Below the pieces are notes generated by a model. It made no database searches. It was not told the DNA's origin and saw only the letters and a list, made by a program, of their open reading frames with translations. From the NCBI GenBank assembly GCA_002269645.1, contig NIVC01002607.1:11967-75966 (forward strand): a DNA stretch of 64,000 bases. The letters run 5' to 3'. How positions within the stretch are numbered: position 1 is the first letter of the stretch; the number at the start of each line of letters is the position of its first letter. The stretch is from Macrostomum lignano (taxonomy: Eukaryota). The translations under genes were made by a program, and so were the position numbers. Shown here piece by piece: positions 4,742 through 30,982 of the stretch.

Positions 4742-4937
4742 TCTGTAGGTTTCTCATCCTATCGAAAAAGCAGTGCGTTATTTTAACCTTCAAAATTTGG
4801 CGTCTTTACCATAGAAAATTGCTGTTGGAAGAGCTTCGTGTTGATAAGCCAGTCATTCTTCAAAGCAGAAACGCTCTCAGAAGTATCAAAAGAACTCACA
4901 AGTACACGAGCCTATCTTTGAGCATCGCAAAGCAGAG

Positions 4938-6433: not shown

Positions 6434-7587
6434 AACGTCGTACTCCCCTTCCCTCCTCCGCTCCATTCTCTCCAGTATTTCCTTTCTTTCTCCCCCTCAG
6501 GCCCGCAGTCATGCGTTAATCCATCTATCTGTTGTCTACCTGGTCCTTGAGGTAAAAATTTTGCCGACTCAATTGCTTACAGTGGGTCTCGCTGAGGCAA
6601 GGAGTACACTAGGGTGGATTGGCGGAACCTTCACAGTTGGGATCTGCACGACCCAGTTCCCAGAAGGGACACACAAATTTTGAGGTATAGCCCGAGCATA
6701 TACGAATACTCGTACAGCTTCTCTTGGAGGACTTGCAGCAAAATACACTGCCGAAATGGGAAGTTGCAGCTTCTGGGATTCTGAATTCGAACGAGTCATA
6801 CGCACAGGCACACACTCACAGGAGTGTACAGCGGCCTCAACTTTATTTATTGTTAGGCATGTACACTTTGCTGTGCCTTGGGGGTTGGCCCTCAAGCTGG
6901 GCGTTAATTGCACGAGCAGAGCCAAGCCGAGATTTAGCCTCAAATTAATGCCACTGCACTTTGAATGGAGTCTGGACCGCTGACACATCAGAGCGCCACG
7001 ACCAGAGCATGGATGACTAGGCTACGGCACCCCAGTAGCCAAATGTATACATGTGAATTTCGCACCCGGACTCCATCTTATCCGAAAATGGCTTGCAGCA
7101 AATTCCAACTTAATTTGTGCAAACTAAACTTAAATGTGTAACCTTAGCTCAAAATCGAAAAATCGTACAAACTTAGCTTCGGCTTAAACACTTAGTGAAA
7201 CTTTTTACCACAAACCAAATTTTGTTTTCAATCCGTAGTAACATGTACTTTTCAGTACAGATTCGCACAGTTCATTTCCATGACCCTTATAACAAGAATT
7301 TGTGCACTCTTAGCCATTCTTTAATACACAACTGAATTGCCGCAAATGCAAACTGTCTATGGCCAGAGCCCGCTGACTGAGATGTACAGTTGCGTCTGTG
7401 GCTGAACCCTCAAACCCTATTATATTGCTGATCCCGAGCCCAAATGCTCTCAGCATTTCTACTTTCGATAAGCTGAATTTGCACTTTTCACAAGACTCTA
7501 TCAGACAGCAACTAGGAGAAACAAGAAACCTTCCTTTCAAAGTTCAACAAAAATCTGCGTGGATCAGCTGATCGCTTCGACCTGAGC

Positions 7588-7669
7588 ATGTTCCGAACGG
7601 TTCTGCTTCTGTTCTGCATGAGCGCAGCCATCTACGGTGCTCTGAGCTGCCCGTCCTCAAAGAAGAAAT
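7588..7669 (+). CDS. WSC gene exon 1: signal peptide MFRTVLLLFCMSAAIYGALSCPSSKKK
   Basis: ATG at 7588, hydrophobic core, 82 nt (phase 1), donor GTGAGT at 7670, 88-nt intron to the acceptor at 7757. Confidence 0.8.
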
Positions 7670-10600
7670 GTGAGTAGCTTTTGTTGCCTTTGATTTGCGC
7701 TTTAGCTTGCTTGTGCTCATGCTCAGCTGCATTCAGGATAATCCTGCCACTTTTCAGCTGAGCCTGATGCAGCTCCGGAAACCAAGGAGGATCCGCCGAA
7801 AGACAGAAGCGATTGGCCTTCAGAAAATCAATTTCACCCTGGTCTGTGAACAGTCACCATCGAGTGACTTTGATAGCCTTTGATTTGCGCTTTAGCTTGC
7901 TTGTGCTCATGCTCAGCTGCATTCAGGATAATCCTGCCACTTTTCAGCTGAGCCTGATGCAACTCCGGAAACCAAGGAGGATCCGCCGAAAGACAGAAGC
8001 GATTGGCCTTCAGAAAATCAATTTCACCCTGGTCTGTAAACAGTCACCATCGAGTGACTTCTTGTCCTCCTGTCATGATTGATTCCACTTTAATAAATGC
8101 ATTTTTCTCATCTGTCAGCATGTCAAAAAGTACTCTCATCATATCAGAACAGTTCCCTCAGCATATTAACATGTCTATAATTCCCAAACAGTTTACAATT
8201 CCCTAGCTGTCTAAATTTCCCAAACTGTTTACAATTCCCCAGCTGTCTACAATTCCCTAGCTGTCTACAATTCCCCAGCTGTCTACAATTCTCCCAAATG
8301 TCTACAGTTCCCCAAATGTCTACAATTCCCAAAGCTGTCTACAATTCCCAAGCTGTCTTTAATTGCCCTGCTGTCTACAATTCCCCACCTCTCTACAGTT
8401 TCCCAGCTGTCTACAATTCTTAAAGCTGTTTACAATCCCCCATCTGTCTTTAATTGCCTTGCTGATTAAAATTCACCAGCTGTCTACAATTCCCCAACTG
8501 TCTACAATCCCCCCAACTTTCTACTGTTCCCCAATATGTGTACAAACATTCACTCCAAAATACTTTGCACTTTAGCTTGTGCTCATGCTCAGCTGCATTC
8601 AAGATATAACTGCCACTTTTCAGCTGGGACAAATGCAGCTCCGACTAGCCAGGACACTTCGAAAGTCAAAACCACTTTGGAAGATCCAGGTGAGACACCA
8701 GTTAGATTTTGAGTTGAATTACAAATTTCTTACTTCAGTAGAGTAACTTCACCCTGGTCTTTGATCTGTCATTATCAAATCACTTATCTTGCCTTTGTGT
8801 CATAAAAGATCCTGTAGTTTTAGCGAGATACGGATCATCTCCTGCGTCTACAATGCCCTGCTGTCTAAATTTCCCCAGCTGTGTACAATTCCCCCAGCTC
8901 TCTACAATTCCCCAGCTGTCTACGATTTCTCCAGATCTCTACAATTCCCCAGCTGTCAACGATTTCTCCAGCTCTCTACAATTCCCCAGCTGTCTACAAC
9001 TCCCCAGCTGTCTACAATTTTCCAGCTGTCTTCAAATGCCCCGCTGTCTTTAATTACTCTGCTGTCTACAATATCCCCAGCCGCGTCTTTAATTGCCATG
9101 CTCTCTACAATTTCCTACCTGTCTTTAATTACTCTGCTGTCTACAATTTCCCCAGCCGCGTCTTTAATTGCCATGCTCTCTACAATTTCCTACCTGTCTT
9201 TAATTGACCTGCTGTCTACAATTCCCCAGCAGTCTACAATTTCCCACCTGTCTACAATTCCCTAGCTGTCTACAATTTTCCAGCTGTCTACAATTTCCCA
9301 CCTGTCTACAATTCCCTAGCTGTCTACAATTTTCCAGCTGTCTACAATTCCCCAGCTGTCTTCTATTGCCTGCTGTCTACAATTTCCCAGCTGTCTGCAT
9401 TTCCCCAGCTGTCTAAAATTGCCCAGCTGTCTACAATTTCCCAGCTGTCTTTAATTGCCATCCTGTCTACAACTTCCCAGCTGTCTGCAATTCCCCAGCT
9501 GTCTACAATTTCCCAGCTGTCTTTAATTGCCTGCTGTCTACAATTTTTCAGCTGTCTTTAATTGACCTGCTGTCTACAATTTCCCAGCTGTCTTTAATTG
9601 CCATCCTGTCTACAATTTCCCAGCTGTCTGCAATTTCCCAGCTGTCTTTAATTGCCATCCTGTCTACAATTCCCCAGCTGTCTAAAATTCCCCAGCTGTC
9701 TACAATTTCCCAGCTGTCTTTAATTGCCATCCTGTCTACAATTTCCCAGCTGTCTGCAATTCCCCAGCTGTCTAAAATTCCCAAGCTGTCTAAAATTCCC
9801 CAGCTGTCTAAAATTCCCCAGCCGTCTTTAATTGCCCTGCTGTCTACATTTCTCCACTTGTCTTAAACTGCCCTGCTGTTTAAAATTCACCAGCTGTTTA
9901 CATTTCCTCAACTGTCTACTATCCCCCCAACTTTCTACTGTTCCCCAATATGTGTACAAACATTCACTCCAAAATACTTTGCACTTTAGCTTGTGCTCAT
10001 GCTCAGCTGCATTCAAGATATAACTGCCACTTTTCAGCTGGGACAAATGCAGCTCCGACTAGCCAGGACACTTCGAAAGTCAAAACCACTTTGGAAGATC
10101 CAGGTGAGACACCAGTTAGATTTTGAGTTGAATTACAAATTTCTTACTTCAGTAGAGTAACTTCACCCTGGTCTTTGATCTGTCATTATCAAATCACTTA
10201 TCTTGCCTTTGTGTCATAAAAGATCCTGTAGTTTTAGCGAGATACGGATCATCTCCTGCGTCTACAATGCCCTGCTGTCTAAATTTCCCCAGCTGTGTAC
10301 AATTCCCCCAGCTCTCTACAATTCCCCAGCTGTCTACGATTTCTCCAGATCTCTACAATTCCCCAGCTGTCTACGATTTCTCCAGCTCTCTACAATTCCC
10401 CAGCTGTCTACAACTCCCCAGCTGTCTACAATTTTCCAGCTGTCTTCAAATGCCCCGCTGTCTTTAATTACTCTGCTGTCTACAATATCCCCAGCCGCGT
10501 CTTTAATTGCCATGCTCTCTACAATTTCCTACCTGTCTTTAATTACTCTGCTGTCTACAATTTCCCAGCCGCGTCTTTAATTGCCATGCTCTCTACAATT

Positions 10601-13600
10601 TCCTACCTGTCTTTAATTGACCTGCTGTCTACAATTCCCCAGCAGTCTACAATTTCCCACCTGTCTACAATTCCCTAGCTGTCTACAATTTTCCAGCTGT
10701 CTACAATTTCCCACCTGTCTACAATTCCCTAGCTGTCTACAATTTTCCAGCTGTCTACAATTCCCCAGCTGTCTTCTATTGCCTGCTGTCTACAATTTCT
10801 TTGCTGTCTTTAATTGCCCTGCTGTCTACAATTCCCCACCTGTTTTTAATTGCTCTTCTGTCTACAATTTTCCAGCTGTTTACAATTCCCCAGCTGTCTA
10901 CGATTTCTCTAACTCTCTACAATTCCCCAGCTGTGTACAATTCCCCAGCTGTCTTTAATTGACCTGCTGTCTACAATTTCCCACCTGTCTACAATTCCCT
11001 AGCTGTCTACAATTTTCCAGCTGTCCACAATTTCCCACCTGTCTTTAATTGCCCTGCTGTCTACAAGTCCCCAGCTGTCTTTAATTGACCTGCTGTCTAC
11101 AATTTCCCACCTGTCTTTAATTGCCATCCTGTCTACAATTTCCCAGCTGTCTGCATTTCCCCAGCTGTCTAAAATTGCCCAGCTGTCTACAATTTCCCAG
11201 CTGTCTTTAATTGCCATCCTGTCTACAACTTCCCAGCTGTCTGCAATTCCCCAGCTGTCTACAATTTCCCAGCTGTCTTTAATTGCCTGCTGTCTACAAT
11301 TTTCCAGCTGTCTTTAATTGACCTGCTGTCTACAATTTCCCAGCTGTCTTTAATTGCCATCCTGTCTACAATTTCCCAGCTGTCTGCAATTTCCCAGCTG
11401 TCTTTAATTGCCATCCTGTCTACAATTCCCCAGCTGTCTAAAATTCCCCAGCTGTCTACAATTTCCCAGCTGTCTTTAATTGCCATCCTGTCTACAATTT
11501 CCCAGCTGTCTGCAATTCCCCAGCTGTCTAAAATTCCCAAGCTGTCTAAAATTCCCCAGCTGTCTAAAATTCCCCAGCCGTCTTTAATTGCCCTGCTGTC
11601 TACATTTCTCCACTTGTCTTAAACTGCCCTGCTGTTTAAAATTCACCAGCTGTTTACAATTCCTCAACTGTCTACAATCCCCCCAACTTTCTACTGTTCC
11701 CCAAATTGTGTACAAACATTCACTCCAAAATACTTTGCACTTTAGCTTGTGCTCATGCTCAGCTGCATTCAAGATATAACTGCCACTTTTCAGCTGGGAC
11801 AAATGCAGCTCCGACTAGCCAGGACACTTCGAAAGTCAAAACCACTTTGGAAGATCCAGGTGAGACACCAGTTAGATTTTGAGTTGAATTACAAATTTCT
11901 TACTTCAGTAGAGTAACTTCACCCTGGTCTTTGATCTGTCATTATCAAATCACTAATCTTGCCTTTGTGTCATAAAAGATCCTGTAGTTTTAGCGAGATA
12001 CGGATCATCTCCTGCGTCTACAATGCCCTGCTGTCTAAATTTCCCCAGCTGTGTACAATTCCTCCAGCTCTCTACAATTCCCCAGCTGTCTACGATTTCT
12101 CCAGATCTCTACAATTCCCCAGCTGTCTACGATTTCTCCAGCTCTCTACAATTCCCCAGCTGTCAACGATTTCTCCAGCTCTGTACAATTCCCCAGCTGT
12201 CTACAACTCCCCAGCTGTCTACAATTTTCCAGCTGTCTTCAAATGCTCTGCTGTCTTTAATTTCTTAGCTGTCTTTAATTACTCTGCTGTCTATAATTTC
12301 CCCAACCGCGTCTTTAATTGCCATGCTCTCTACAATTTCCTACCTGTCTACAATTCCCTAGCTGTCTACAATTTTCCAGCTGTCCACAATTTCCCAGCTG
12401 ACTTTAATTGCCATCCTGTCTACAACTTCCCAGCTGTCTGCAATTCCCCAGCTGTCTACAATTTCCCAGCTGTCTTTAATTCCCCAGCTGTCTACAATTT
12501 CCCATCTGTCTTTAATTGCCCTGCTGTCTACAATTTTCCAGCTGTCTTTAATTGCCATCCTGTCTACAATTTCCCAGCTGTCTTTAATTGCCATCCTGTC
12601 TACAATTCCCCAGTTTTCTAAAATTCCCCAGCTGTCTACAATTTCCCAGCTGTCTTTAATTGCCATCCTGTCTACAATTTCCCAGCTGTCTGCAATTCCC
12701 CAGCTGTCTAAAATTCCCCTGCTGTCTACATTTCCCAGCCGTCTTTAATTACCCTGCTGTCTACATTTCCCCAGCCGTCTTTAATTGCCCTGCTGTCTAC
12801 ATTTCCCCAGCCGTCTTTAATTGCCCTGCTGTCTACATTTCCCCAGCCGTCTTTAATTGCCCTGCTGTCTACATTTCCCCAGCCGTCTTTAATTGCCCTG
12901 CTGTCTACATTTCCCCAGCCCTCTTTAATTGCCCTGCTGTCTACATTTCCCCAGCCGTCTTTAATTGCCCTGCTGTCTACATTTCCCCAGCCGTCTTTAA
13001 TTGCCCAGCTGTCTACAATTCTCCACCTCTCTACAGTTTCCCAGCTGTCTACAATTATTAAAGCTGTTTACAATCCCCCATCTGTATTTAATTGCCTTGC
13101 TGTTTAAAATTCACCAGCTGTCTACAATTCCCCAACTGTCTACAATTTCCCAGCTGTCTGCAATTCCCCAGCTGTCTAAAATTTCCCAGCTGTCTAAAAT
13201 TCCCCAGCTGTCCAAAATTCCCCACCTGTCTTTAATTGCCCTGCTGTCTACATTTCCCCAGCCGTCTTTAATTGCCCTGCTGTCTACATTTCCCCAGCCG
13301 TCTTTAATTGCCCTGCTGTCTACATTTCCCCAGCCGTCTTTAATTGCCCAGCTGTCTAGAATTCTCCACCTCTCTACAGTTTCCCAGCTGTCTACAATTA
13401 TTAAAGCTGTTTACAATCCCCCATCTGTATTTAATTGCCTTGCTGTTTAAAATTCACCAGCTGTCTACAATTCCCCAACTGTCTACAATCCCCCCAACTT
13501 TCTACTGTTCCCCAATATGTGTACAAACATTCACTCCAAAATACTTTGCACTTTAGTTTGTGCTCATGCTCAGCTGCATTCAAGATATAACTGCCACTTT

Positions 13601-16600
13601 TCAGCTGGGACAAGTGCAGCTCCGACTAGCCAGGACACTTCGAAAGTCAAAACCACTTTGGAAGATCCAGGTGAGACACCAGTCAGATTTTGAGTTGAAT
13701 TACAAATTTCTTACTTCAGTAGAGTAACTTCACCCTGGTCTTTGATCTGTCATTATCAAATCACTTATCTTGCCTTTGTGTCATAAAAGATCCTGTAGTT
13801 TTAGCGAGATACGTATCATCTCCTGCGTCTACAATGCCCTGCTGTCTAAATTTCCCCAGCTGTGTACAATTCCCCCAGCTCTCTACAATTCCCCAGCTGT
13901 CTACGATTTCTCCAGATCTCTACAATTCCCCAGCTGTCTACGATTTCTTTAGATCTCTACAATTCCCCAGCTGTCTACAACTCCCCAGCTGTCTACAATT
14001 TCCCAGCTGTCTTCAAATGCCCCGCTGTCTACAATTCTCCACCTCTCTACAGTTTCCCAGCTGTCTACAATTATTAAAGCTGTTTACAATCCCCCATCTG
14101 TATTTAATTGCCTTGCTGTTTAAAATTCACCAGCTGTCTACAATTCCCCAACTGTCTACAATCCCCCCAACTTTCTACTGTTCCCCAATATGTGTACAAA
14201 CAGTCACTCCAAAATACTTTGCACTTTAGCTTGTGCTCATGCTCAGCTGCATTCAAGATATAACTGCCACTTTTCAGCTGGGACAAATGCAGCTCCGACT
14301 AGCCAGGACACTTCGAAAGTCAAAACCACTTTGGAAGATCCAGGTGAGACACCAGTTAGATTTTGAGTTGAATTACAAATTTCTTACTTCAGTAGAGTAA
14401 CTTCACCCTGGTCTTTGATCTGTCATTATCAAATCACTAATCTTGCCTTTGTGTCATAAAAGATCCTGTAGTTTTAGCGAGATACGGATCATCTCCTGCG
14501 TCTACAATGCCCTGCTGTCTAAATTTCCCCAGCTGTGTACAATTCCTCCAGCTCTCTACAATTCCCCAGCTGTCTACGATTTCTCCAGATCTCTACAATT
14601 CCCCAGCTGTCTACGATTTCTCCAGCTCTCTACAATTCCCAGCTGTCAACGATTTCTCCAGCTCTGTACAATTCCCCAGCTGTCTACAACTCCCCAGCTG
14701 TCTACAATTTTCCAGCTGTCTTCAAATGCTCTGCTGTCTTTAATTTCTTAGCTGTCTTTAATTACTCTGCTGTCTATAATTTCCCCAACCGCGTCTTTAA
14801 TTGCCATGCTCTCTACAATTTCCTACCTGTCTACAATTCCCTAGCTGTCTACAATTTTCCAGCTGTCCACAATTTCCCAGCTGACTTTAATTGCCATCCT
14901 GTCTACAACTTCCCAGCTGTCTGCAATTCCCCAGCTGTCTACAATTTCCCAGCTGTCTTTAATTCCCCAGCTGTCTACAATTTCCCATCTGTCTTTAATT
15001 GCCCTGCTGTCTACAATTTTCCAGCTGTCTTTAATTGCCATCCTGTCTACAATTTCCCAGCTGTCTTTAATTGCCATCCTGTCTACAATTCCCCAGTTTT
15101 CTAAAATTCCCCAGCTGTCTACAATTTCCCAGCTGTCTTTAATTGCCATCCTGTCTACAATTTCCCAGCTGTCTGCAATTCCCCAGCTGTCTAAAATTCC
15201 CCTGCTGTCTACATTTCCCCAGCCGTCTTTAATTACCCTGCTGTCTACATTTCCCCAGCCGTCTTTAATTGCCCTGCTGTCTACATTTCCCCAGCCGTCT
15301 TTAATTGCCCTGCTGTCTACATTTCCCCAGCCGTCTTTAATTGCCCTGCTGTCTACATTTCCCCAGCCGTCTTTAATTGCCCTGCTGTCTACATTTCCCC
15401 AGCCCTCTTTAATTGCCCTGCTGTCTACATTTCCCCAGCCGTCTTTAATTGCCCTGCTGTCTACATTTCCCCAGCCGTCTTTAATTGCCCAGCTGTCTAC
15501 AATTCTCCACCTCTCTACAGTTTCCCAGCTGTCTACAATTATTAAAGCTGTTTACAATCCCCCATCTGTATTTAATTGCCTTGCTGTTTAAAATTCACCA
15601 GCTGTCTACAATTCCCCAACTGTCTACAATTTCCCAGCTGTCTGCAATTCCCCAGCTGTCTAAAATTTCCCAGCTGTCTAAAATTCCCCAGCTGTCCAAA
15701 ATTCCCCACCTGTCTTTAATTGCCCTGCTGTCTACATTTCCCCAGCCGTCTTTAATTGCCCTGCTGTCTACATTTCCCCAGCCGTCTTTAATTGCCCTGC
15801 TGTCTACATTTCCCCAGCCGTCTTTAATTGCCCAGCTGTCTAGAATTCTCCACCTCTCTACAGTTTCCCAGCTGTCTACAATTATTAAAGCTGTTTACAA
15901 TCCCCCATCTGTATTTAATTGCCTTGCTGTTTAAAATTCACCAGCTGTCTACAATTCCCCAACTGTCTACAATCCCCCCAACTTTCTACTGTTCCCCAAT
16001 ATGTGTACAAACATTCACTCCAAAATACTTTGCACTTTAGTTTGTGCTCATGCTCAGCTGCATTCAAGATATAACTGCCACTTTTCAGCTGGGACAAGTG
16101 CAGCTCCGACTAGCCAGGACACTTCGAAAGTCAAAACCACTTTGGAAGATCCAGGTGAGACACCAGTCAGATTTTGAGTTGAATTACAAATTTCTTACTT
16201 CAGTAGAGTAACTTCACCCTGGTCTTTGATCTGTCATTATCAAATCACTTATCTTGCCTTTGTGTCATAAAAGATCCTGTAGTTTTAGCGAGATACGTAT
16301 CATCTCCTGCGTCTACAATGCCCTGCTGTCTAAATTTCCCCAGCTGTGTACAATTCCCCCAGCTCTCTACAATTCCCCAGCTGTCTACGATTTCTCCAGA
16401 TCTCTACAATTCCCCAGCTGTCTACGATTTCTTTAGATCTCTACAATTCCCCAGCTGTCTACAACTCCCCAGCTGTCTACAATTTCCCAGCTGTCTTCAA
16501 ATGCCCCGCTGTCTACAATTCTCCACCTCTCTACAGTTTCCCAGCTGTCTACAATTATTAAAGCTGTTTACAATCCCCCATCTGTATTTAATTGCCTTGC

Positions 16601-19600: not shown

Positions 19601-22600
19601 AATTTTCCAGCTGTCTACAATTTCCCCAGCCGCGTCTGTAATTGCCATGCTCTCTACAATTTCCTACCTGTCTTTAATTGCCCTTCTGTCTACAATTCCC
19701 CACCTGTTTTCTAATTGCTGTGCTGTCTACAATTCCTCAGGTGTCTACAATTCCCCAGCTGTCTACAATTCCCCAACTGTCTACAATCATCCCAACTATC
19801 TACCGTTTTCCAAATTGTGTACAAACATTCACTCCAAAATACTTTGCACTTTAGCTTGTGCTCATGCTCAGCTGCATTCAAGATATAACTGTCACTTTTC
19901 AGCTGGGACAAGTGCAGCTCCAAGTAGCCAGGAGACTTTGAATGGCAAAAGCGCTCCGGAAGATCCAGGTGAGACACCAGTTAGATTTTGAGTTGAATTA
20001 CAATTTTTTTACTTACCCCGGCTGCAGCGTTGATTTTAGACTGCAAAATCAGCTCAGTGTGTCAGAAAAGTTTCCTCAGTATGTCAGAACAGTTTCCTCA
20101 GTATTTCTTGCTTCATTAGTGTCATTAAGCTGGTATATAAACTGACACTATCAAACCATTTCAATTGTCTTCATGTCATAAATTATCCCAGTTTGAAACA
20201 GATGCATTTTCTTCAGCATGTCAAGACATGTCCTTGTCCATGTCATGACAGTTTTGCATTAGCAGATCTTATACTTAATTGCTCGCATGTACCCCGTAGC
20301 TGATGCAAATCGCTATCATCAAACTCTGCTCAGTTTTGGTTTAATTGTCCCCAACATTTTCAGTCCAATCTTTCAATGGTATTGGCTGCTATCTCATAAC
20401 CAATAAAGTGAATAATGAAGTGAAACTGGAAATGAAGCAAAATATTAAAATGTCGCACCGCGTTTGCGCTCTTGAGTGTGCCAGGAAAAGTCCCTTAAAG
20501 AGATACAAATACTTCGGCCTCGCCAATGGTGACAACTGCCTGTGTGCATCGGAACTGCCTAGGAACTCAAGTATAGTCGATAACCCTGAAGTCCATTGTT
20601 CGTATCGCTGCCCAGGAAATCACCTGCAATCGTGCGGTGGCGAGAATGCAGCAGCCTATTTTAGCGTCAGCGCAACACTGTCTTCTATGAGAAAAGGTAA
20701 TTAGATTGATTGACACAGAGCTAAGGCTGCTTATATTAGTGATGTTCTCAAGTAAAGTCCAAGTACAAATTTACCATTTCAGATAAATTCGAGCAGGGAG
20801 CGAAGGTCTATCCGGTTATTCCAGGTGAGTGACTACTGAATTCTTTCAGTCAAATTCTATGTTTAAGGGTCTGCTTACATTGATTGTCATCTTTCCACCA
20901 TCCAAGCGGCTCTGTCTCTCGTGCATCTCATTCAGTTCTTTGTAGTCAAGCGTCTTGTGTTTATCATCGGTCTCTGGGTGGTCGTTAGTCTTCTGCCTCA
21001 TCACATAAATAATTATAATTTTAGTATACCCGCAACTGTACCTTATTCATACACATGGACTTGTGCTCAACCGTTATTTATTTTCATTTTCAGCTTCAGT
21101 TTTTCCGGAATGCTACGATAACCAACATGACTTGACAAAGGTGTTGCAAAGTATTGTGATGTCGCACCTTGTTTGCGCCTCCGAGTGTGTGAGGCGTGAT
21201 CTCTACGGGAAAAAATTCAAATATTTCGCTATCACCGACTTCGACACTTGCTTCTGTGCATCGACATTACCCACTTTAACGGAGAAAACAAAAAATTCCT
21301 ATTGTTCGTATCGGTGCCCAGGAAATCACAATCAGTCATGCGGGGGAGACCACAAGATAGCGTATTTCAACCTGAGCACAACAACTGTTCCTCCAAAAAA
21401 AGGCAAGAATTTTGTCATATTACTCCCTGTGCATGAGCTGCTTCTGTTTCGAATGGAAACTGCTTTTCACAAACTGCTTACAATTTCCAAAGATGCTCTT
21501 CATGTCCAGCTGTCTACAATTCCACAGCTGCCTACAATTTCACAGCTGTCTACAATTCTCCCGCTGTCTACAATTCCCCAGCTGTCTACGATTCCCCGGC
21601 AGTCTACAATTCCCAGCTATATTCAATTACCCAGCTGTCAATTCCCCAGCTACAATTCCCCAACTGTCTACAATTCCCTCGGTGTCTACATTTTCATAGC
21701 TGTCTACAATTCCCCAGCTGTCTACAATTCCCCAGCTGTCTACGATTACCCGGCAGTCTACGATTCCCCGGCAGTCTACAATTCCCTAGCTGTCTACAAT
21801 TCTCCAGCTGTCTACGATTCCCCGGCAGTCTACAATTCCCTAGCTGTCTACAATTCTCCAGCTGTCTACAACTACCCAGCTATCTACAATTCCCAGCTAT
21901 CTACAATTACCCAGTTGTCAATTCCCCAGCTACAATTCCCCAACTGTCTACAATTTCCTCGCTGTCTACATTTTCATAGCTGTCTACAATTCCCCAGCTG
22001 TCTACAATTCCCCAGCTGTCTACGATTACCCGGCAGTCTACGATTCCCCGGCAGTCTACAATTCCCTAGCTGTCTACAATTCTCCAGCTGTCTACTATTC
22101 CCCGGCAGTCTACAATTCCCTAGCTGTCTACAATTCTCCAGCTGTCTACGATTCCCCGACAGTCTACAATTCCCTAGCTGTCTACAATTCCCCAGCTGTC
22201 TACGATTCCCCGGCAGTCTACAATTCCCTAGCTGTCTACAATTCCCTAGCTGTCTACAATTCTCCAACTGTCTACGATTCCCCTGCAGTCTACAATTCCC
22301 CAGCTGTCTACAATTCTCCAGCTGTCTACGATTCCCCGACAGTCTACAATTCCCTAGCTGTCTACAATTCTCTAGCTGTCTACGATTCCCCGACAGTCTA
22401 CAATTCCCTAGCTGTCTACAATTCTCCAGCTGTCTACGATTCCCCGGCAGTCTACAATTCGTTAGCTGCCTGTTTCGATTCAAATAAAAATCTAAAATAG
22501 TTTTTCTGGCATTCCAATGACTCTCATCCAGTTAAGGTCATCGAAATGTTTGAGTTCATTTCTTAGATTTATTTCACTGGCCAGAAGCACCGTATCGGTT

Positions 22601-25600
22601 CACTTAAAATCACCCCAGCTTGATCAAACTTTCTCGAAAAATTTTATATTCTCAAATTTTCTATTATTCAGATACATACGAGCAGGGACCGTGGGTCACT
22701 CCAATTTTACCGGGTAAGTTTCCATCTGAATATTTCCGCTGTTTAAGCTGCTCTTACTTAAATTAATTAGTTTTAACCATTTCAGAAAACATATCGATGG
22801 CAGCCTGCGCTGTGAACATGATGATGGAAAATTCAGATGTGGTGTCTACTCGAAGAGGGATTCCATTTGAAACTTGCGCTCGAGGGTGTATCAATGTCGA
22901 TCTTTACGACAATTACAAATATTTTTTCATTCGCGACGATAAAGAATGCGTTTGTGCACCCGAGCTTCCAGAATACTCGGATATTTATCCGGACAGTGAC
23001 TGTAAAGGAAGGTGTCCTCGTATAAAAGGATCACTCGAATTTTGCGGAAATCAAGATTTTTTGGCATTTTTCAATCTTATTCGACAAAAACCAGGCAAGT
23101 ATTCGGTGACAGCTCCGGCTTTTACGATAAACATTTGCAGCTCCTTTTTAATCCTACATTCTAAAGCATGTACTCAACTTGCTAGTATCCATGCTAGTAT
23201 CGAGTAATTACAAACTCACTTCAACCTCCGCACCACTCAGACCAGTCCAAGTCGAATCTGCCAACTCCGGATCAGCAAAAACAAAGTGAGAGAACAGATT
23301 CAAAGTTTTAATTATGAATAATATTCTTCAGCTCAAAGTAAAAGTAATTATAACCACACTGCAACGTCCGCACCACGCAGGCCAGCCCGAATCGGTTCCG
23401 GCAACTCCGGATCCCAGAGCGCAGAGCGTCACACAAAATCCAAGTGAGAACTGCATGTCAGAACAGTTCCCTCAGCATGTCAGAACAGTTCCCTCAGCAT
23501 GTCAGAACAGTTCCCTCAGCATGTCAGAACAGTTCTCTCAGCATGTCAGAACAGTTCCCTCAGCATGTCAGAACAGTTCCCTCAGCATGTCAGAACAGTT
23601 CCCTCAGCATATCAGAACAGTTCCCTCAGCATGTCAGAACAGTTCCCTCAGCATGTCAGAATAATTCCCCCAGCATGTCAGAACAGTTCCCTCAGCATGT
23701 CAGAATAATTCCCCCAGCATGTCAGAACAGTTCCCTCAGCATGCCAGACTAATTCCCCCAGCATACCAGAACAGTTCCCTCAGCATGCCAGACTAATTCC
23801 CCCAGCATACCAGAACAGTTCCCTCAGCATGCCAGACTAATTCCCCCAGCATACCAGAACAGTTTCCTCAGCATGTCAGAACAGTTCCCCAGCATACCAG
23901 AATAATTCCCTCAGCATACCAGAACAGTTCCCTCAGCATGTAAGAAAAGCCCCTACTCCTATATTGATGTAATGCTTTTCATGAAACATTGGACCACTTT
24001 TCCCCAACGGTTGCAGGAGATCCCATAGGATGCTATTCAATATACCAAGGCTATCCGATGGCAAAGCTGGAACTAGTAAATAAAGAAAAAATGTCGCACC
24101 GCGTTTGCGCTTTCGAGTGTCGCAAGAAAAATGCCTTGAAGAAATTCAAATACTTCAGCCTCGCCTTCGGTGACAGCTGCCTGTGTGCATCGGAACTGCC
24201 CCACGACTCGTACAGGCTGAGTATCGAGAAAGATTGTTCGATCCGCTGCCCAGCAAGTCACATGGAGTCGTGCGGTGGAGAAAGTGGAGCGGCGTATTTC
24301 AGCCTGAGCACAATAACCAACTCGCCGAACTTTGGTAAGCTGTTGGCAAATTCGATTGGAAACTGAGACTGTTGAAGGCCACTTGCCAATTCTTGATCTT
24401 CTTGCAATTTACCTTACGATTTCAGATAAATTCGAGCAGGGAGCGAAGGTCTATCCGGTTATTCCAGGTGAGTTAAACTTGAAGCTTGTCAGTCGCATAA
24501 TCTGTCTCATTACAATTAACTATTATAATCTTATGCGGATCTCATCCGCATGCACTTGTGCTCACTTGTTATTCATTTTCATTTTTAGCTTCAGATTCTC
24601 TGAAATGCTACGAAAATCGTTATGAATTGACAAAGGTGTTGCAAAGCGATGATGAGATGTCACACCTTGTTTGCGCCTCCGAGTGTGTGAGGCGTGATCT
24701 CTACGGGAAAAAATTCAAATATTTCGCCATCGCTAACGGTGACCGCTGCTTTTGCGAATCGGAACTACCTCCGGCGAAGTATAAAAGAAAACTCAACGAA
24801 AAATGTTCATATCGATGTCCGCGAAATGACAAGCAGTCATGCGGTGGTCCCGGGGGAATTGTGTATTTTAAACTGGAAATCACGAATACTCCTCCGGAAT
24901 CAGGCAAGTGTTCGGTCACGTCACCGCCTGTGCATGAGCTGATGCTGACTTGAATTCAAACCAATTTGATTCTTTTCCGTTAAAAGCCGTTTGCCCATTC
25001 GCTAATTCTCAATCGATCAGCCCCAATTCACCGTATGCTCACCTGCCTAAAATTCTCCCAAACATCTACAATGCCCTCAGCCATCGATTCACCCAGCTCT
25101 CTTACAATTCTCACAGCTATCTGATATTCACCCAGCAGTATATAATCGCCCCAGCTGTCTACAGTTACTTAGCAATGAGGAAGTTTTGATCTCAGCTAAG
25201 AGCATCCAGCTTTTCTCCCTGGTTTCACTTCCATCTGACTTGAAAATCCGATCGAGCTGTTGTATAATGTTTTCTACTGAGTTCACCCATGACGTCACCT
25301 TTTCAGACAAAAAGAAGCAAGGAGCGAAGGTCTATCCAGCTATTCCTAGTGAGTTTACTATTTCCGTCTATTCTGATTCATCTTCTGTAGTTTAATATTT
25401 CTGCATGTTTTTATCAGCCACAACACTTGCTTGTGCACTTGTTTTTACCTGCAATGCATTTGATTTCAAATGTTTTAGATTCCTCATTTGAATGTTACAT
25501 CGATGAATATTTAGCTAAACCCAAACTAAAATCTGATAATATGTCGCACCTCATTTGCGCTACCGAGTGTGTGAGGCGTGATCTCTACGGCAGATTCAAA

Positions 25601-28600
25601 TATTTCGCCATCGCTAACGGTGACCGCTGCTTTTGCGAATCGGAACTACCTCCGGCGAAGTATAAAAGAAAACTCAACGAAAAATGTTCATATCGATGTC
25701 CGCGAAATGACAAGCAGTCATGCGGTGGTCCCGGGGGAATTGTGTATTTTAAACTGGAAATCACGAATACTCCTCCGGAATCAGGCAAGTGTTCGGTCAC
25801 GTCACCGCCTGTGCATGAGCTGATGCTGACTTGAATTCAAACCAATTTGATTCTTTTCCGTTAAAAGCCGTTTGCCCATTCGCTAATTCTCAATCGATCA
25901 GCCCCAATTCACCGTATGCTCACCTGCCTAAAATTCTCCCAAACATCTACAATGCCCTCAGCCATCGATTCACCCAGCTCTCTTACAATTCTCACAGCTA
26001 TCTGATATTCACCCAGCAGTATATAATCGCCCCAGCTGTCTACAGTTACTTAGCAATGAGGAAGTTTTGATCTCAGCTAAGAGCATCCAGCTTTTCTCCC
26101 TGGTTTCACTTCCATCTGACTTGAAAATCCGATCGAGCTGTTGTATAATGTTTTCTACTGAGTTCACCCATGACGTCACCTTTTCAGACAAAAAGAAGCA
26201 AGGAGCGAAGGTCTATCCAGCTATTCCTAGTGAGTTTACTATTTCCGTCTATTCTGATTCATCTTCTGTAGTTTAATATTTCTGCATGTTTTTATCAGCC
26301 ACAACACTTGCTTGTGCACTTGTTTTTACCTGCAATGCATTTGATTTCAAATGTTTTAGATTCCTCATTTGAATGTTACATCGATAAATATTTAGCTAAA
26401 CCCAAACTAAAATCTGATAATATGTCGCACCTTGTTTGCGCTACCGAGTGTGTGAGGCGTGATCTCTACGGCAGATTCAAATATTTCGCCATCGCTAACG
26501 GTGACCGCTGCTTTTGCGAATCGGAACTACCTCCGGCGAAGTATAAAAGAAAACTCAACGAAAAATGTTCATATCGATGTCCGCGAAATGACAAGCAGTC
26601 ATGCGGTGGTCCCGGGGGAATTGTGTATTTTAAACTGGAAATCACGAATACTCCTCCGGAATCAGGCAAGTGTTCGGTCACGTCACCGCCTGTGCATGAG
26701 CTGATGCTGACTTGAATTCAAACCAATTTGATTCTTTTCCGTTAAAAGCCATTTGCCCATTCGCTAATTCTCAATCGATCAGCCCCAATTCACCGTATGC
26801 TCACCTGCCTAAAATTCTCCCAAACATCTACAATGCCCTCAGCCATCGATTCACCCAGCTCTCTTACAATTCTCACAGCTATCTGATATTCACCCAGCAG
26901 TATATAATCGCCCCAGCTGTCTACAGTTACTTAGCAATGAGGAAGTTTTGATCTCAGCTAAGAGCATCCAGCTTTTCTCCCTGGTTTCACTTCCATCTGA
27001 CTTGAAAATCCGATCGAGCTGTTGTATAATGTTTTCTACTGAGTTCACCCATGACGTCACCTTTTCAGACAAAAAGAAGCAAGGAGCGAAGGTCTATCCA
27101 GCTATTCCTAGTGAGTTTACTATTTCCGTCTATTCTGATTCATCTTCTGTAGTTTAATATTTCTGCATGTTTTTATCAGCCACAACACTTGCTTGTGCAC
27201 TTGTTTTTACCTGCAATGCATTTGATTTCAAATGTTTTAGATTCCTCATTTGAATGTTACATCGATGAATATTTAGCTAAACCCAAACTAAAATCTGATA
27301 ATATGTCGCACCTCATTTGCGCTACCGAGTGTGTGAGGCGTGATCTCTACGGCAGATTCAAATATTTCGCCATCGCTAACGGTGACCGCTGCTTTTGCGA
27401 ATCGGAACTACCTCCGGCGAAGTATAAAAGAAAACTCAACGAAAAATGTTCATATCGATGTCCGCGAAATGACAAGCAGTCATGCGGTGGTCCCGGGGGA
27501 ATTGTGTATTTTAAACTGGAAATCACGAATACTCCTCCGGAATCAGGCAAGTGTTCGGTCACGTCACCGCCTGTGCATGAGCTGATGCTGACTTGAATTC
27601 AAACCAATTTGATTCTTTTCCGTTAAAAGCCGTTTGCCCATTCGCTAATTCTCAATCGATCAGCCCCAATTCACCGTATGCTCACCTGCCTAAAATTCTC
27701 CCAAGCATCTACAATGCCCTCAGCCATCGATTCACCCAGCTCTCCTAAGATATTCACCCAGCTATCTGATATTCACCCAGCAGTATAAAACTGCCCCAGC
27801 TGTCTACAGTTACTATGCAATGAGGATGTTTAGTCTTAGTCAGAACTGCTAAGAGCATCCAGCTTTTCTCCCTGGTCACGTCACCGCCTGTGCATGAGCT
27901 GGTGCTGACTTGAATGCAAACAAACCAATTCGATTCTTTTCCGTTAAGCCGTTTGCCAGTTCTCAATCGATCAGCCCCGATTCGCCCATCATTCCATTAA
28001 ACTTTGCACTTTAACTTGTGCTCATGCTCAGCTGCATTAATTATTTAACTGCCACTTTTCAGCTGAGTCTACTGCAGCTCCGACTAGCCAGGAGACTCAA
28101 AAAGGCAAAGGCGCTTCGGAAGATCCAGGTTGGACACCAGTCAGATTTTGAGTTGAATTACAAATTTCTTACTTCAGTAAAGCAACTTCACCCTGGTCTG
28201 TAATCTGTCACTATCGAATCCCTTATCTTGCCTTTCTGAGTGATCCTGCAGTTTTAGCGAGATCCGCATCATCTCCTGCGGCATTATCCCATGTCATTGT
28301 GCAACAATTCAATTCAAATTTACATACTGCAGGTCGGATTATCAACACATTTCAAACACCGTCCGGAGCCAATACGGCGCTACGTAGTACGGAAAAAAGC
28401 AGCACTTCAGAATCTCTAGCTTATTTTTAGATTAGCGATTATCCCTGCCTTCTGTTAGCCTTGATGAGCATTTCGACATTGAGCTGTCTACAATTTCCCT
28501 GCTGTCTACAATTCCCCAGCTGTCTACAATTCCCCAGCTGTCTACATTCCCCAGCTGTCTTTAATTGCCCTGCTGTCTACAATTCCCTCAATTGTCTAAA

Positions 28601-30982
28601 ATTCCCTAGCTGTCTACAATTCCCAAGCTGTCTAAAATTCCCCAACTGTCTTTAATTGCCCAGCTGTCTACAATTCCCCCAGTTGTCTAAAATTCCGTAG
28701 CTGTCTACAACTCCCCCAACTGTTTACAATTCCCCAACTGTCTATCATGCCCTCCAGCTGTCTACAATTCCCCAATATGAGGTCAAACGTTCACTCCATA
28801 AAAATTTGCACTTTAGCTTGTGCTCATGCTCAGCTGCATTCTTATATAACTGCCACTTTTCAGCTGGGACCACTACAGCTCCTGCAACCCAGAAGGACCT
28901 GAAAGGCAACAGCGCTTCGGAAGATTCAGGTGAGATTCCAGATCGGAAGTTGAATTACAAATTTCTTACTTCAGTAGAGTAACTTCACCCTGTCATGCGA
29001 TTCTCTTAGTTACTTCTAAGAAATGCCAAGTGCCACTGGATTTTCTCCTTGATTTCTCCTTGTCCACTGACCTGAAAATATTTTACGTATTTTCGAGAGG
29101 ACGTAAAATTAAAGATTGATTTTGCATTTTAGATGAAAAGAAGCAGGGAGCGAAGGTCTATCCAGCTATTTCGGGTGAGTTTGAGTTTGAGTGAGTTTGA
29201 GTTTCTATAAACCAAAAACGCTGACTTGTGCTCTTGTTCTCACCTGCTGTGAATTCAATTTTAACTGTTTTAGATTCTTCACCTGCATGCTACTTCTTTT
29301 ATGAGAGCGATTATCGGAATGATCATCCAGTACTAAAATCTAATAAGATGTCACACCTTATTTGCGCTACCGAGTGTGTGAGGCGTAATGTCAACGACAG
29401 GTACAAATATTTCGCCATCACTAACGGTAGCCGCTGCTACTGTAGATCGGAACTACCTCCAGCGATTTATAAATCTGGTGGCAAAAACTCGGATGTTTGT
29501 GGGCATCGATGTCAACAAAATTACAAGCAACCATGCGGTAGCCCAATAGGAATCGTGTATTCAAATCTGACCACATCAAATACTCCTCCTATAACAGGCA
29601 AGTGTGGCTCAGCCATCTTCCATTCACCCAGCTCTCTACGATATTCGCACACTGTTTGACATTCACCCAACAGTATAAAATTACCCCAACTGCTGGAGAT
29701 GTTTTGGTCTTGGTCAGAACTGCCAAGAGCTTCCAGCTTTTCTCCCTGATTTCATTTCCACCTGACCTGAAAATCTGTTTGAGCTGATGTGAAATGTTCT
29801 CTTCTAGAGTGCACCCACATATTTGTCCTTACAGATAAATACGAGCAGGGAGCGAAGGTCTATCCAGTTATTCCGGGTGAGTTCACTATTTGAGTTCACT
29901 CTGATTCCTCTTGTGCAGTTTAATATTTCTGCTGGTTTCTGTTACCAAAAACGCTTGCTTGTGCACTTGTTCTCACCTGCCATTCAACTAATTTCAACTG
30001 TTTTAGACTCTCCAGTTGGATGCTACCCGTACGATAATTCTATTTTTTTTCTACTTAAATCTAAATGGATGTCACACCTCATTTGCGCTACCGAGTGTGT
30101 GAAGCGTGATCTCTACGGCAGATTCAAATATTTCGCCATCACTAACGGTGACCGCTGCTTTTGTGAATCGGAACTACCTCCGGCGAGCGAAAAGATTTCC
30201 GTCAACGAACATTGTTCATATCGATGTCTACGAAATTTCAAGCAAATATGCGGTAGCGGTACGGGAATTGTGTATTTTAAGCTGGAAACCACGAATACTC
30301 CTCATAAATCAGGCAAGTGTTCGGTCACATCACCGCCTGTGCATGATCTGGTGCTGACTTGAATGCAATCCAATTTGATTCTTTTCCGTTAAAAGCCGTT
30401 TGCAATTCACGTAACAGTCTGAAATAACCTGACAGTAAGTTCAATACAGAAAAAAAGGTCAATTTGGAAAGGCTTGTACTGCCGAGTATTGCTGAATTCT
30501 GAACAAATCTACGGATTCTATGCAAGTTTTTGTTTGTCCGTTGATATGCAGGAAAAACTAAAGCGAGATCTGTCAGAGTCCAAGATTCGGAGAGATTTGG
30601 AGGGATTGTTTAAGATTTTAAGGAAACTGTAAGCTTAAGTGAATAAAAAATCAAAATCAAAATAAATAAATATTGCTCAGCTGTCTACAATTCCCTGGCT
30701 ATCTACAATTCCCTGGCTATCTACAATTCCCCAGCTGTCTACAATTCCCCAGCTGTCTACAATTCCCCAGCTGTCTACAATTCCCCAATCTGTGTGCAGA
30801 TATGCACTCCGCATTCCCTTGATGTCTGCACCCATTCCTCAACTGACTGTAAACATCCAGTTACCCTTTATGACAAATTTCAGACAACTGACACGGCTGC
30901 TCCGAGGCCAGTGGAGCGGTCCGGTGCTGCACAGAATCCGGCAGGTGACCCAAAGCGAACTGACAGCGTCTCGGCTCTTTGA
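7588..30982 (+). CDS. Multi-exon gene for a probably secreted tandem WSC-domain protein (10 WSC domains plus S/T/P/A-rich linkers; roughly 1500 aa if all exons are included)
   Basis: Signal-peptide exon followed by more than 30 exons, each with an AG acceptor, GT or GC donor, length divisible by 3 and an open phase-1 frame. WSC pattern (G)CY...C...C...YF....G..C.C...C...C.G...CG. No transmembrane exon found; the terminal exon is tentative. Confidence 0.85.
7758..8031 (+). CDS. Two 84-nt linker exons (7758-7841, 7948-8031; EPDAAPETKEDPPKDRSDWPSENQFHP) in a 190-bp tandem duplication
   Basis: Acceptor CCACTTTTCAG, open phase 1-1; donor GTCTGT is weak, so the 3' boundary is uncertain. Confidence 0.55.
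8170..19800. repeat. Intronic 18-19 bp minisatellite (CTGTCTACAATTCCCCAG) with higher-order repeats (2484-bp duplication; 673/1811-bp sub-spacing)
   Basis: Hundreds of unit variants between the 66-nt exon modules. Exon spacings 11794 to 14278, 13605 to 16089 and 14278 to 16762 are all 2484 bp. Confidence 0.92.
8624..19968 (+). CDS. Ten 66-nt linker exons (GTNAAPTSQDTSKVKTTLEDP-like) at 8624, 10038, 11794, 13605, 14278, 16089, 16762, 18008, 19100, 19903
   Basis: Each is CACTTTTCAG|66 nt|GTGAGA, phase 1-1 and stop-free. Diverged copies (19903, 28063, 28864) keep the exact 66-nt length. Confidence 0.75.
20364..20696 (+). CDS. WSC exon W1 (type A, GT donor)
   Basis: TTTTCAG|333 nt|GTAATT; GIGCY...MSHRVCALEC...YFGLANGDNCLC...CSYRCPGNHLQSCGG. 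Confidence 0.92.
20783..29876 (+). CDS. Eight 42-nt spacer exons (KFEQGAKVYPVIP-like) at 20783, 22672, 24426, 25307, 26188, 27069, 29133, 29835
   Basis: Each is YAG|42 nt|GTGAGT or GTAAGT, phase 1-1, placed 72-275 nt upstream of a WSC exon. Confidence 0.88.
21100..21402 (+). CDS. WSC exon W2 (type B, GC donor)
   Basis: CTTCAG|303 nt|GCAAGA; ECYDN...VCASECVRR...CFC...CSYRCPGNHNQSCGG. Confidence 0.88.
21505..22465. repeat. CTGTCTACAATTCCCCAG-family minisatellite (also 28480-28780, 30675-30790)
   Basis: Same unit as 8170-19800. Confidence 0.9.
22786..23094 (+). CDS. WSC exon W3 (divergent, GC donor)
   Basis: CATTTCAG|309 nt|GCAAGT; FETCARGC...YKYFFI...ECVCAPELP...CKGRCP...FCG. Confidence 0.85.
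23455..23945. repeat. 22-bp minisatellite (CAGAACAGTTCCCTCAGCATGT)
   Basis: Tandem array; short relics at ~8143, ~20060 and ~31790. Confidence 0.9.
24017..24334 (+). CDS. WSC exon W4 (type A, GT donor)
   Basis: TTGCAG|318 nt|GTAAGC; PIGCY...MSHRVCAFEC...CLCASELP...CSIRCP...SCGG. Confidence 0.92.
24595..24903 (+). CDS. WSC exon W5 (type B, GC donor, mosaic)
   Basis: CTTCAG|309 nt|GCAAGT. Confidence 0.9.
25479..25784 (+). CDS. WSC exon W6 (881-bp tandem unit)
   Basis: TTTTAG|306 nt|GCAAGT. Confidence 0.9.
26360..26665 (+). CDS. WSC exon W7 (881-bp tandem unit)
   Basis: TTTTAG|306 nt|GCAAGT; differs from W6 and W8 by E to K and I to V. Confidence 0.88.
27241..27546 (+). CDS. WSC exon W8 (881-bp tandem unit)
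   Basis: TTTTAG|306 nt|GCAAGT. Confidence 0.88.
28063..28929 (+). CDS. Two diverged 66-nt linker exons (28063-28128 ESTAAPTSQETQKGKGASEDP; 28864-28929 GTTTAPATQKDLKGNSASEDS)
   Basis: CACTTTTCAG acceptors, donors GTTGGA and GTGAGA, exact 66 nt, stop-free. Confidence 0.72.
29274..29597 (+). CDS. WSC exon W9 (GC donor)
   Basis: TTTTAG|324 nt|GCAAGT; PACY...ICATECVRR...CYC...CGHRCQQ...CGS. Confidence 0.88.
30007..30312 (+). CDS. WSC exon W10 (GC donor)
   Basis: TTTTAG|306 nt|GCAAGT; VGCY...ICATECVKR...CFC...CSYRCLR...CGS. Confidence 0.9.
30861..30982 (+). CDS. Candidate terminal exon of the WSC gene (TLYDKFQTTDTAAPRPVERSGAAQNPAGDPKRTDSVSAL*)
   Basis: CTGAC...CATCCAG acceptor in phase 1, TAAP motif like the linker exons, stop at 30980-30982, AATAAA at ~31405. 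It could instead be an 84-nt internal exon ending at 30944 (GTGACC). Confidence 0.4.

Follow-up and report, generated by a model that had tools for sequence, protein, structure and literature searches.

The question raised by this locus is whether a long array of exons encoding WSC domains, any subset of which could be skipped in frame, serves as a splice-diversified recognition system or instead reflects duplication of exon cassettes in the germline. The window analyzed here is a stretch of 64,000 nucleotides (nt) that forms the last 64 kb of the 75,966-bp contig NIVC01002607.1 (Macrostomum lignano, assembly GCA_002269645.1), and positions refer to it unless another locus is named. On its + strand lies BOX15_Mlig009330g1, whose product is held in GenBank as PAA56548.1 (1409 amino acids (aa), "hypothetical protein"; P0007) and in UniProt as A0A267E4T1, named 'WSC domain-containing protein'. 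Overall, the gene likely encodes a secreted multi-WSC gland protein that has grown by cassette duplication and whose main transcript constitutively carries the full set of WSC and spacer exons.

Gene structure and predicted product

BOX15_Mlig009330g1 is a real and already annotated gene that has gone unstudied. A subset of 30 of the exons that we called from the raw sequence translates into PAA56548.1 with 100% identity over 1409 aa, and this deposited protein holds every WSC and spacer exon, being without 6 of the 10 near-identical 66-nt exons at the 5' end and those only. With all 66-nt exons included, the maximal product would comprise 36 exons and 1541 aa; the mRNA exceeds 4.2 kb. The M. 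lignano gene annotation was made from RNA-seq by StringTie, TACO and a de novo transcriptome (PMC5730564), and therefore the gene is expressed and its splice junctions, including those with GC donors, are used. A second genomic copy, BOX15_Mlig015297g1 (PAA76924.1, 1130 aa; P0001), is found on contig NIVC01000778.1, where positions 10001-38392 of the extracted locus (L001) correspond to window positions 7588-30891. The literature search found no paper on BOX15_Mlig009330g1 or PAA56548.1, and the ids Mlig009330 and Mlig015297 were absent from the literature text searched and from the supplements of PMC7336406 and PMC5946080; a preliminary description of this DNA, which had called the gene undescribed, is thus right as far as papers are concerned and wrong as far as the databases are. 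A protein search with the WSC part of the gene model returned matches that were all from M. lignano, PAA56548.1 among them. Searching a word-indexed database of 5.8 billion proteins with a profile of the WSC cassette alignment returned two M. lignano fragments only and was uninformative, and an Rfam scan of the window gave no match.

The exon anatomy set out in the preliminary description, with a signal exon, two 84-nt, twelve 66-nt and eight 42-nt exons and ten WSC exons, proved almost exact to the base; two more linker exons of phase 1-1, 45 and 63 nt long, are to be added (Table 1). The statement on exon phase also holds: each of the 34 internal exons has a length divisible by three, is phase 1-1 and is open solely in that frame. 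The gene end required correction. It had been placed at 30982, in a frame whose stop is out of reach in phase 1, whereas the real stop codon lies at 30889-30891. The annotated gene length of 23,304 bp leads to window positions 7588-30891, and the terminal exon ('...KS-DN*') agrees both with that length and with the '...HKSDN' C-terminus of PAA56548.1 and PAA76924.1.

The signal peptide, MFRTVLLLFCMSAAIYGALS, shows an n-region and an h-region as judged by eye. No hydrophobic 19-mer follows it in PAA56548.1, the top later 19-mer having 12 of 19 hydrophobic residues and the C-terminus reading ...TPHKSDN. Because a signal peptide is present and no later hydrophobic segment was found, the product is predicted to be a soluble secreted glycoprotein, which together with the ten WSC exons sustains the original view that symmetric phase-1 cassettes make up the gene of a secreted, modular WSC protein. 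Its layout begins with two 28-aa units and up to ten 22-aa repeats rich in Thr, Ser, Pro and Ala, one 66-nt exon each, and continues into the WSC part, in which ten WSC domains are joined by 14-aa Pro-containing spacers (type DKFEQGAKVYPVIP) encoded by one 42-nt exon each. The first 276 aa after the signal peptide, with their 22-aa repeats, contain 18% T, 13% A, 12% P and 10.5% S, a composition less extreme than that of the proline-threonine-serine domains of classical mucins; this 5' repeat region is probably a mucin-like stalk carrying O-glycans.

All ten WSC exons matched the Pfam WSC profile hidden Markov model (PF01822) when searched singly (E = 4e-14 to 4e-6), and nine of them passed the gathering score, WSC exon 3 reaching 27.3 against the 27.8 bits required. 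The whole protein, PAA56548.1, matched over ten stretches with E = 1.2e-92. Weak Pfam matches of PAA56548.1 to TraN, DUF4754, XRCC4_CC and NinH were discarded as summed repeat noise, no stretch being significant alone. When 18 copies taken from both loci were aligned, eight cysteine columns proved invariant, bearing out the claim that the Cys scaffold is kept while the copies diverge; the eight cysteines are also kept in sequences A1 and A2. Variation falls mostly in the segment from Cys1 to the conserved MSH motif and in the Cys5-Cys6 loop, in agreement with the preliminary description. Among the copies the ratio of non-synonymous to synonymous substitution rates (dN/dS) was 0.5-1.1, and WSC1-5 of one locus are separated from those of the other by 14.5 non-synonymous versus 3.5 synonymous changes, which is approximately neutral.

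The AlphaFold2 (AF2) model of the WSC exon 6 domain had a predicted local distance difference test score of 77 and a predicted template modelling score of 0.72. A Foldseek search of the PDB with this model returned as best match the crystal structure of Kremen1 (5fwt; E = 9e-5, TM 0.66, 26% identity), with the cysteine-rich domain of yeast Wsc1 (7pz2) also on top and PAN and HGF N domains following weakly; a PDB sequence search of the WSC domain agreed with these structure matches. Each WSC domain is read as a PAN/apple-type fold with eight cysteines, encoded by one exon.

Donor sites and exon inclusion

GC donors (AG/GCAAGT or AG/GCAAGA) end eight of the ten WSC exons, a GT donor being found only at WSC1 and WSC4. 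The GC introns start at 21403, 23095, 24904, 25785, 26666, 27547, 29598 and 30313, and they amount to 8 of 35 introns when 36 exons are used. GC-AG introns usually make up about 1%, and their share in this gene lies far above that. The three-domain paralog Mlig010030g1 (L003) is composed of the same unit, a 42-nt exon and a WSC exon with a GC donor, and carries GC donors at all three of its WSC exons (positions 5577, 6461 and 7299 of that locus). Inheritance together with the duplicated cassette appears to explain the abundance of GC donors.

The preliminary description had suggested a different use of these junctions, namely alternative splicing of the cassettes, which would yield secreted lectins with varying numbers and orders of WSC domains and with linkers of varying length, and would amount to a recognition system resembling Dscam, the FREPs or SpTransformer. 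Several features are compatible with it: any subset of the internal exons is skippable in frame, the spacers are 42-nt micro-exons, PAA56548.1 carries 4 of the 10 66-nt exons at the 5' end, and the dN/dS range given above accompanies variation centred on two segments. At alternatively spliced exons GC donors occur more often than elsewhere, and eight of the ten WSC exons have them. The transcript-derived models argue otherwise, as PAA56548.1 and PAA76924.1 both hold every WSC and 42-nt exon of their own locus in genomic order, and the databases hold one protein per locus for the two gene copies. Since all WSC exons stand in series in these models, mutually exclusive use as in Dscam, which picks one exon per cluster, is excluded for the dominant transcript. 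The gene shares with Dscam, snail FREPs and sea-urchin SpTransformer a tandem arrangement of similar exons or elements, an extracellular product and symmetric phases, and differs in having no immunoglobulin, fibrinogen or SpTransformer element.

What the models lack is six (window) or seven (L001) near-identical 66-nt repeats and nothing else. Both proteins are annotated with 3+1 repeats (three of the form GTNAAP...D and a terminal variant), in contrast to the 10 and 11 5' exons in the respective genomic sequences. Because the same 3+1 count occurs at loci with 10 and 11 exons, we read it as repeat collapse or multi-mapping of short reads, which is to be expected of short-read assembly, and not as skipping; this suggests that the public gene models may under-count the 66-nt repeats. 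As for the remaining arguments, the GC donors fit a strong AG/GCAAGT consensus and are inherited with the cassette in the three-domain paralog, phase 1-1 symmetry is the norm in extracellular mosaic proteins, and the locus has no immune context, the family context known in M. lignano being reproductive. We conclude that phase symmetry, GC donors and 42-nt micro-exons are real but generic features, and we consider a splice-generated repertoire quite improbable. The earlier proposal that domain number, order and linker length vary by copy number and by splicing consequently divides: the copy-number part stands, with two copies and paralogs that differ, and the splicing part finds no support in the models, which include all WSC and 42-nt exons.

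Cassette duplication, the second copy and the surrounding sequence

Both copies are flanked by Isy1 upstream and by an SPMIP10-like gene downstream, and the latter confirms the synteny of the two loci. The upstream flanks are 99.8% identical and the downstream flanks 95-96%. BOX15_Mlig015297g1 has an N-terminus identical to that of the window gene, WSC1-5 that are 95-98% identical, a common cassette grammar and the same 'DN*' end; it differs in having 8 instead of 10 WSC exons and 11 instead of 10 5' 66-nt exons, in being without the internal 66-nt pair, and in its distal WSC exons, which are diverged and not triplicated. A more distant paralog (P0002) shows the cassette order 1-2-3*-4-2-3*. 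In the DNA, therefore, the number and order of domains and the length of linkers can be shown to vary. M. lignano is a hidden polyploid, in which duplicated blocks such as those holding the two gene copies are expected (PMC5730564).

Two very recent tandem duplications lie within the gene (Table 1). Each unit of the 881-884-bp duplication runs from the 3' part of a WSC exon through a 42-nt exon into the 5' part of the WSC exon after it, and WSC6, WSC7 and WSC8 are therefore nearly identical. The unit begins within WSC exon 5, so that WSC5 is chimeric, its 5' part being unique and its 3' part repeated; compared with WSC6 its N-terminal segment is saturated, whereas the synonymous distance (dS) in the remainder is 0.08. 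In the comparison of WSC10 with WSC8 of L001, the N-terminal segment is likewise saturated, with dS of 0.88 versus 0.02 in the remainder. Saturated N-terminal segments combined with low dS elsewhere place recombination breakpoints inside exons. We propose that the gene was made, and may still be remodelled, by tandem duplication and unequal recombination of two kinds of phase-1 exon cassette, one consisting of a 42-nt exon and a WSC exon with its GC donor and the other of a 66-nt exon and its minisatellite intron. On this mechanism it would be germline DNA, between copies and between paralogs, in which domain number, order and linker length vary.

The minisatellite in question has an 18-bp unit, GTCTACAATTCCCCAGCT, which fills the introns of the 5' array (8172-19787, + strand) and forms further blocks at 21506-22460, 28482-28774 and 30678-30787 (Tandem Repeats Finder). 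Its 272 copies (at most 2 mismatches) are all on the + strand and all within 8191-30755; none were found in the other 33 kb of the window and none in the paralog L003. About half of the gene consists of this intronic repeat. The open reading frames that run through it (PQLSTI, SPAVYN and LQFPSC repeats) were rejected as coding sequence: the transcript-based protein contains none of them, and it is nothing unusual for an 18-mer to be free of stops in three frames. The minisatellite region has a GC skew of about -0.4, and each unit contains a pyrimidine-rich ...CCCCAG that resembles a decoy 3' splice site. A second minisatellite, with a 22-bp unit (GCATGTCAGAACAGTTCCCTCA), occupies 23453-23946, the intron before WSC exon 4, and has short copies at 20053-20104, in the intron after the last 66-nt exon, and at 31789-31835, just downstream of the gene.

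Copy differences of this kind might partly be produced by the assembly itself, with WSC6-8, the 66-nt duplicates and the differences between the two loci representing mis-assembly or uncollapsed haplotigs. Units that are 99-100% identical are hard to count, the upstream flanks of the two copies are nearly the same, the window ends a 76-kb contig that terminates in satellite, and 180 Mb of the assembly lies in duplicated blocks of at least 95% identity (PMC5730564). The two copies nevertheless differ by divergent WSC exons, WSC6-8 of L001 being 75-86% identical to the best window exons, and their downstream flanks have diverged as stated above. Moreover, an older independent prediction from another assembly (UniProt A0A1I8J9J6; P0010) also contains three near-identical WSC6-8, and the gene, its cassettes and their phases are independent of exact copy number. 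We therefore regard it as unlikely that the repeat counts are in part an assembly artefact.

Table 1. Exons of BOX15_Mlig009330g1 and tandem duplications within the gene (positions in the window)
Feature	Position	Strand	Support or remark
Exon 1, start codon and signal peptide (MFRTVLLLFCMSAAIYGALSCPSSKKK), 82 nt, ends in phase 1	7588-7669	+	same as PAA56548.1 N-terminus
84-nt linker exon (SEPDAAPETKEDPPKDRSDWPSENQFHP), phase 1-1	7758-7841	+	inside 190-bp x2 tandem duplication; matches PAA56548.1
84-nt linker exon, second copy	7948-8031	+	matches PAA56548.1
66-nt mucin-like linker exon (AGTNAAPTSQDTSKVKTTLEDP)	8624-8689	+	sequence found in PAA56548.1
66-nt linker exon	10038-10103	+	our exon call
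66-nt linker exon	11794-11859	+	our exon call
66-nt linker exon, N>S variant, intact; unrepresented in PAA56548.1	13605-13670	+	
66-nt linker exon	14278-14343	+	our exon call
66-nt linker exon, N>S variant; copy of 13605 exon at 2484-bp offset	16089-16154	+	
66-nt linker exon; copy of 14278 exon at 2484-bp offset	16762-16827	+	
66-nt linker exon, D>E variant	18008-18073	+	
66-nt linker exon, D>E variant	19100-19165	+	
66-nt linker exon (AGTSAAPSSQETLNGKSAPEDP), last of 5' array	19903-19968	+	in PAA56548.1
WSC exon 1, 333 nt, GT donor	20364-20696	+	Pfam WSC 4e-14; PAA56548.1
42-nt spacer exon (DKFEQGAKVYPVIP)	20783-20824	+	PAA56548.1
WSC exon 2, 309 nt, GC donor AG/GCAAGA	21094-21402	+	Pfam WSC 1.2e-11; PAA56548.1
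42-nt spacer exon (DTYEQGPWVTPILP)	22672-22713	+	PAA56548.1
WSC exon 3, 309 nt, GC donor, most divergent copy, all 8 Cys kept	22786-23094	+	Pfam 4.3e-6
45-nt linker exon (DQSKSNLPTPDQQKQ), missed in earlier inventory	23241-23285	+	in PAA56548.1
63-nt linker exon (SQPESVPATPDPRAQSVTQNP), missed in earlier inventory	23381-23443	+	in PAA56548.1
WSC exon 4, 318 nt, GT donor	24017-24334	+	Pfam WSC 1.1e-10; PAA56548.1
42-nt spacer exon	24426-24467	+	PAA56548.1
WSC exon 5, 315 nt, GC donor, chimeric: unique 5' part, 881-bp repeat from ~24650	24589-24903	+	
42-nt spacer exon (DKKKQGAKVYPAIP)	25307-25348	+	PAA56548.1
WSC exon 6, 306 nt, GC donor	25479-25784	+	Pfam WSC match; PAA56548.1; AF2 model
42-nt spacer exon	26188-26229	+	PAA56548.1
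WSC exon 7, 306 nt, GC donor, 98% identical to WSC exon 6	26360-26665	+	
42-nt spacer exon	27069-27110	+	PAA56548.1
WSC exon 8, 306 nt, GC donor, coding sequence identical to WSC exon 6	27241-27546	+	
Internal 66-nt linker exon (AESTAAPTSQETQKGKGASEDP), absent from L001	28063-28128	+	PAA56548.1
Internal 66-nt linker exon (AGTTTAPATQKDLKGNSASEDS), absent from L001	28864-28929	+	PAA56548.1
42-nt spacer exon (DEKKQGAKVYPAIS)	29133-29174	+	PAA56548.1
WSC exon 9, 324 nt, GC donor	29274-29597	+	Pfam WSC 1.1e-7; PAA56548.1
42-nt spacer exon (DKYEQGAKVYPVIP)	29835-29876	+	PAA56548.1
WSC exon 10, 306 nt, GC donor	30007-30312	+	Pfam WSC 2.5e-10; PAA56548.1
Terminal exon, coding part, (G)AC AAC TGA = Asp-Asn-stop, then 3' untranslated region	30884-30891	+	
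Tandem duplication, 2484-bp period, at least 99% identity, two 66-nt exons per unit	11650-17033	+	
Tandem unit of 881-884 bp, ~3.6 copies, 98-99.6% identity	24650-27876	+	

Downstream of the gene, the small SPMIP10-like gene (PF14983) lies at about 34831-36092 on the - strand, and is likewise found downstream of L001. Exons of a gene with Sushi/CCP repeats follow at 39216-39761 and 43138-43422, also on the - strand (Pfam Sushi, 9.5e-25 and 3e-6), the annotated product having at least 646 aa. Unrelated minisatellites, with units of 14-75 bp repeated 10-90 times each, are unusually dense in 33692-49527 and 4129-6435, examples being a 22-bp unit x 91 at 47533-49527 and a 36-bp unit x 33 at 43400-44619; such a density fits the share of 15% that simple and tandem repeats are reported to have in the M. 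lignano genome. A 23-bp satellite (TGACGCTTCTATGATTTTTTACA) of about 337 copies with 93% matches extends from 56389 to 64000, up to the end of the window and of the contig, and is probably the reason for the assembly break there.

Function and relation to known systems

Long WSC arrays are found in many eukaryotes, so that the architecture of this protein is already known, if uncharacterized. Poly-WSC proteins include the oyster 'putative fungistatic metabolite' K1QKY9 (7 domains), Saccostrea LOC134282764 (10), a Diplonema protein (23) and proteins of the basidiomycetes Tilletia and Cryptococcus (9-12); like the window protein they carry long WSC arrays, are predicted to be extracellular and are uncharacterized, and they are related to it by the domain alone. 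Yeast Wsc1 joins a WSC domain to a Ser/Thr-rich O-glycosylated stalk, whereas the window protein has its stalk at the N-terminus and no membrane anchor. Wsc1 is further distinguished by having one domain, by acting as a membrane-anchored mechanosensor and by coming from a different kingdom, with only 21% identity; the WSC (PAN/apple-type) fold with four disulfides is common to Wsc1 (7pz2), the Serendipita indica lectins and the window protein. The closest solved animal WSC fold is that of Kremen1 (5fwt), yet the vertebrate proteins Kremen1/2, polycystin-1 and WSCD1/2 each have a single WSC domain amid other domain types, are membrane proteins or Golgi sulfotransferases and contain no tandem array. 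In fungi, WSC domains are implicated in interactions with carbohydrates or the cell wall. Examples are the Wsc1 sensors of yeast (PMC9024836) and the WSC lectins that Serendipita secretes and that bind glucan (PMC9252488); for S. indica WSC3, PMC9252488 cites Wawra et al. 2019, whose title names it a beta-glucan-binding lectin.

The product may act in a gland secretion as a multivalent protein that binds or cross-links glycans or glycosylated partners. The sole precedent in M. lignano is that of prostate-gland and seminal-fluid WSC proteins. By our own reading of the BLAST table, roughly two dozen entries with WSC-type hits belong to the 76 prostate-limited transcripts (PMC5977470). Mlig-pro5 (RNA815_80.4), Mlig-pro46, Mlig-pro4, Mlig-pro63 and others resemble the window gene in coming from the same species, in being secreted and in having WSC as sole recognizable module, and also in forming multi-copy gene clusters with presumed rapid evolution (PMC5977470, PMC4490696, PMC6953679). 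Unlike it, they have 2-3 WSC domains, distant sequences, no reported mucin-like exon array and an established site of expression.

A more specific possibility is that BOX15_Mlig009330g1 itself encodes a prostate-gland seminal-fluid protein that is passed on at mating, with cassette turnover caused by sexual selection or conflict. The WSC transcript RNA815_80.4 is prostate-specific, and its RNA interference (RNAi) abolishes prostate-gland antibody staining (PMC4490696); sperm competitive ability fell after knock-down of Mlig-pro46, a WSCD2-like candidate (PMC6953679). The signal peptide, the high dN/dS and the copy differences would likewise be typical of reproductive proteins. RNA815_80.4 (969 nt) was considered as a candidate for BOX15_Mlig009330g1 and rejected as a different WSC gene, just distantly similar when the start of its sequence was compared by eye. 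The prostate WSC transcripts measure about 0.3-1.7 kb, far from the mRNA length of the window gene, neither copy's id is among the 18 mapped candidates considered below or in the literature text searched, and rhabdite, pharyngeal, cement/shell, adhesive and mucus glands are equally possible sites. Since the prostate WSC proteins are short and distantly related, the seminal-fluid reading is one of analogy, and we hold it only as a tentative possibility next to the broader reading of a gland protein.

That broader reading, in which a secreted multi-WSC gland protein arises by cassette duplication with constitutive WSC inclusion, has several observations weighing against it. The literature search found no glycan-binding data for any animal poly-WSC protein; BOX15_Mlig009330g1 is not among the 18 of 76 Mlig-pro candidates that were mapped to Mlig_3_7 gene ids (PMC6953679); and the prostate WSC proteins serving as precedent have 2-3 domains and little sequence similarity to it. 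The six unannotated 66-nt exons may or may not be spliced in, some regulated skipping would fit the GC donors and the 42-nt micro-exons, and repeat copy numbers may be inexact in a PacBio assembly of a hidden polyploid.

We also considered a further scenario, in which the locus is a germline cassette-shuffling lectin gene whose strand-specific, intron-confined minisatellite and phase-1 cassettes with GC donors drive frequent unequal recombination, possibly with regulated skipping of 66-nt or WSC exons. Individuals and subgenome copies would then differ in their multivalent WSC proteins, and these might be used in sexual conflict, by binding of the ejaculate to partner glycans, or in microbe recognition. 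This scenario as a whole seems doubtful at best. No evidence tying BOX15_Mlig009330g1 to immunity was found, the family context in M. lignano being reproductive only (PMC5977470, PMC4490696, PMC6953679).

What is distinctive about the locus is its mucin-like exon array, the conserved GC-AG cassette junctions, the intron-confined minisatellite and the structural differences between copies. At present these features open no new kind of recognition system. They make the gene a well-resolved example of an extracellular mosaic gene growing by symmetric cassette duplication, with chimeric domains, an intron minisatellite and an inherited GC-AG donor. Macrostomum also serves as a model of sexual selection in hermaphrodites, and its seminal-fluid candidates are dominated by WSC proteins, to which BOX15_Mlig009330g1 adds a large relative that has gone unstudied. 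Should the number of cassettes turn out to be polymorphic or regulated by splicing, the gene would lend itself to the study of how a putative lectin evolves rapidly in structure, in a species for which transgenesis and RNAi are available.

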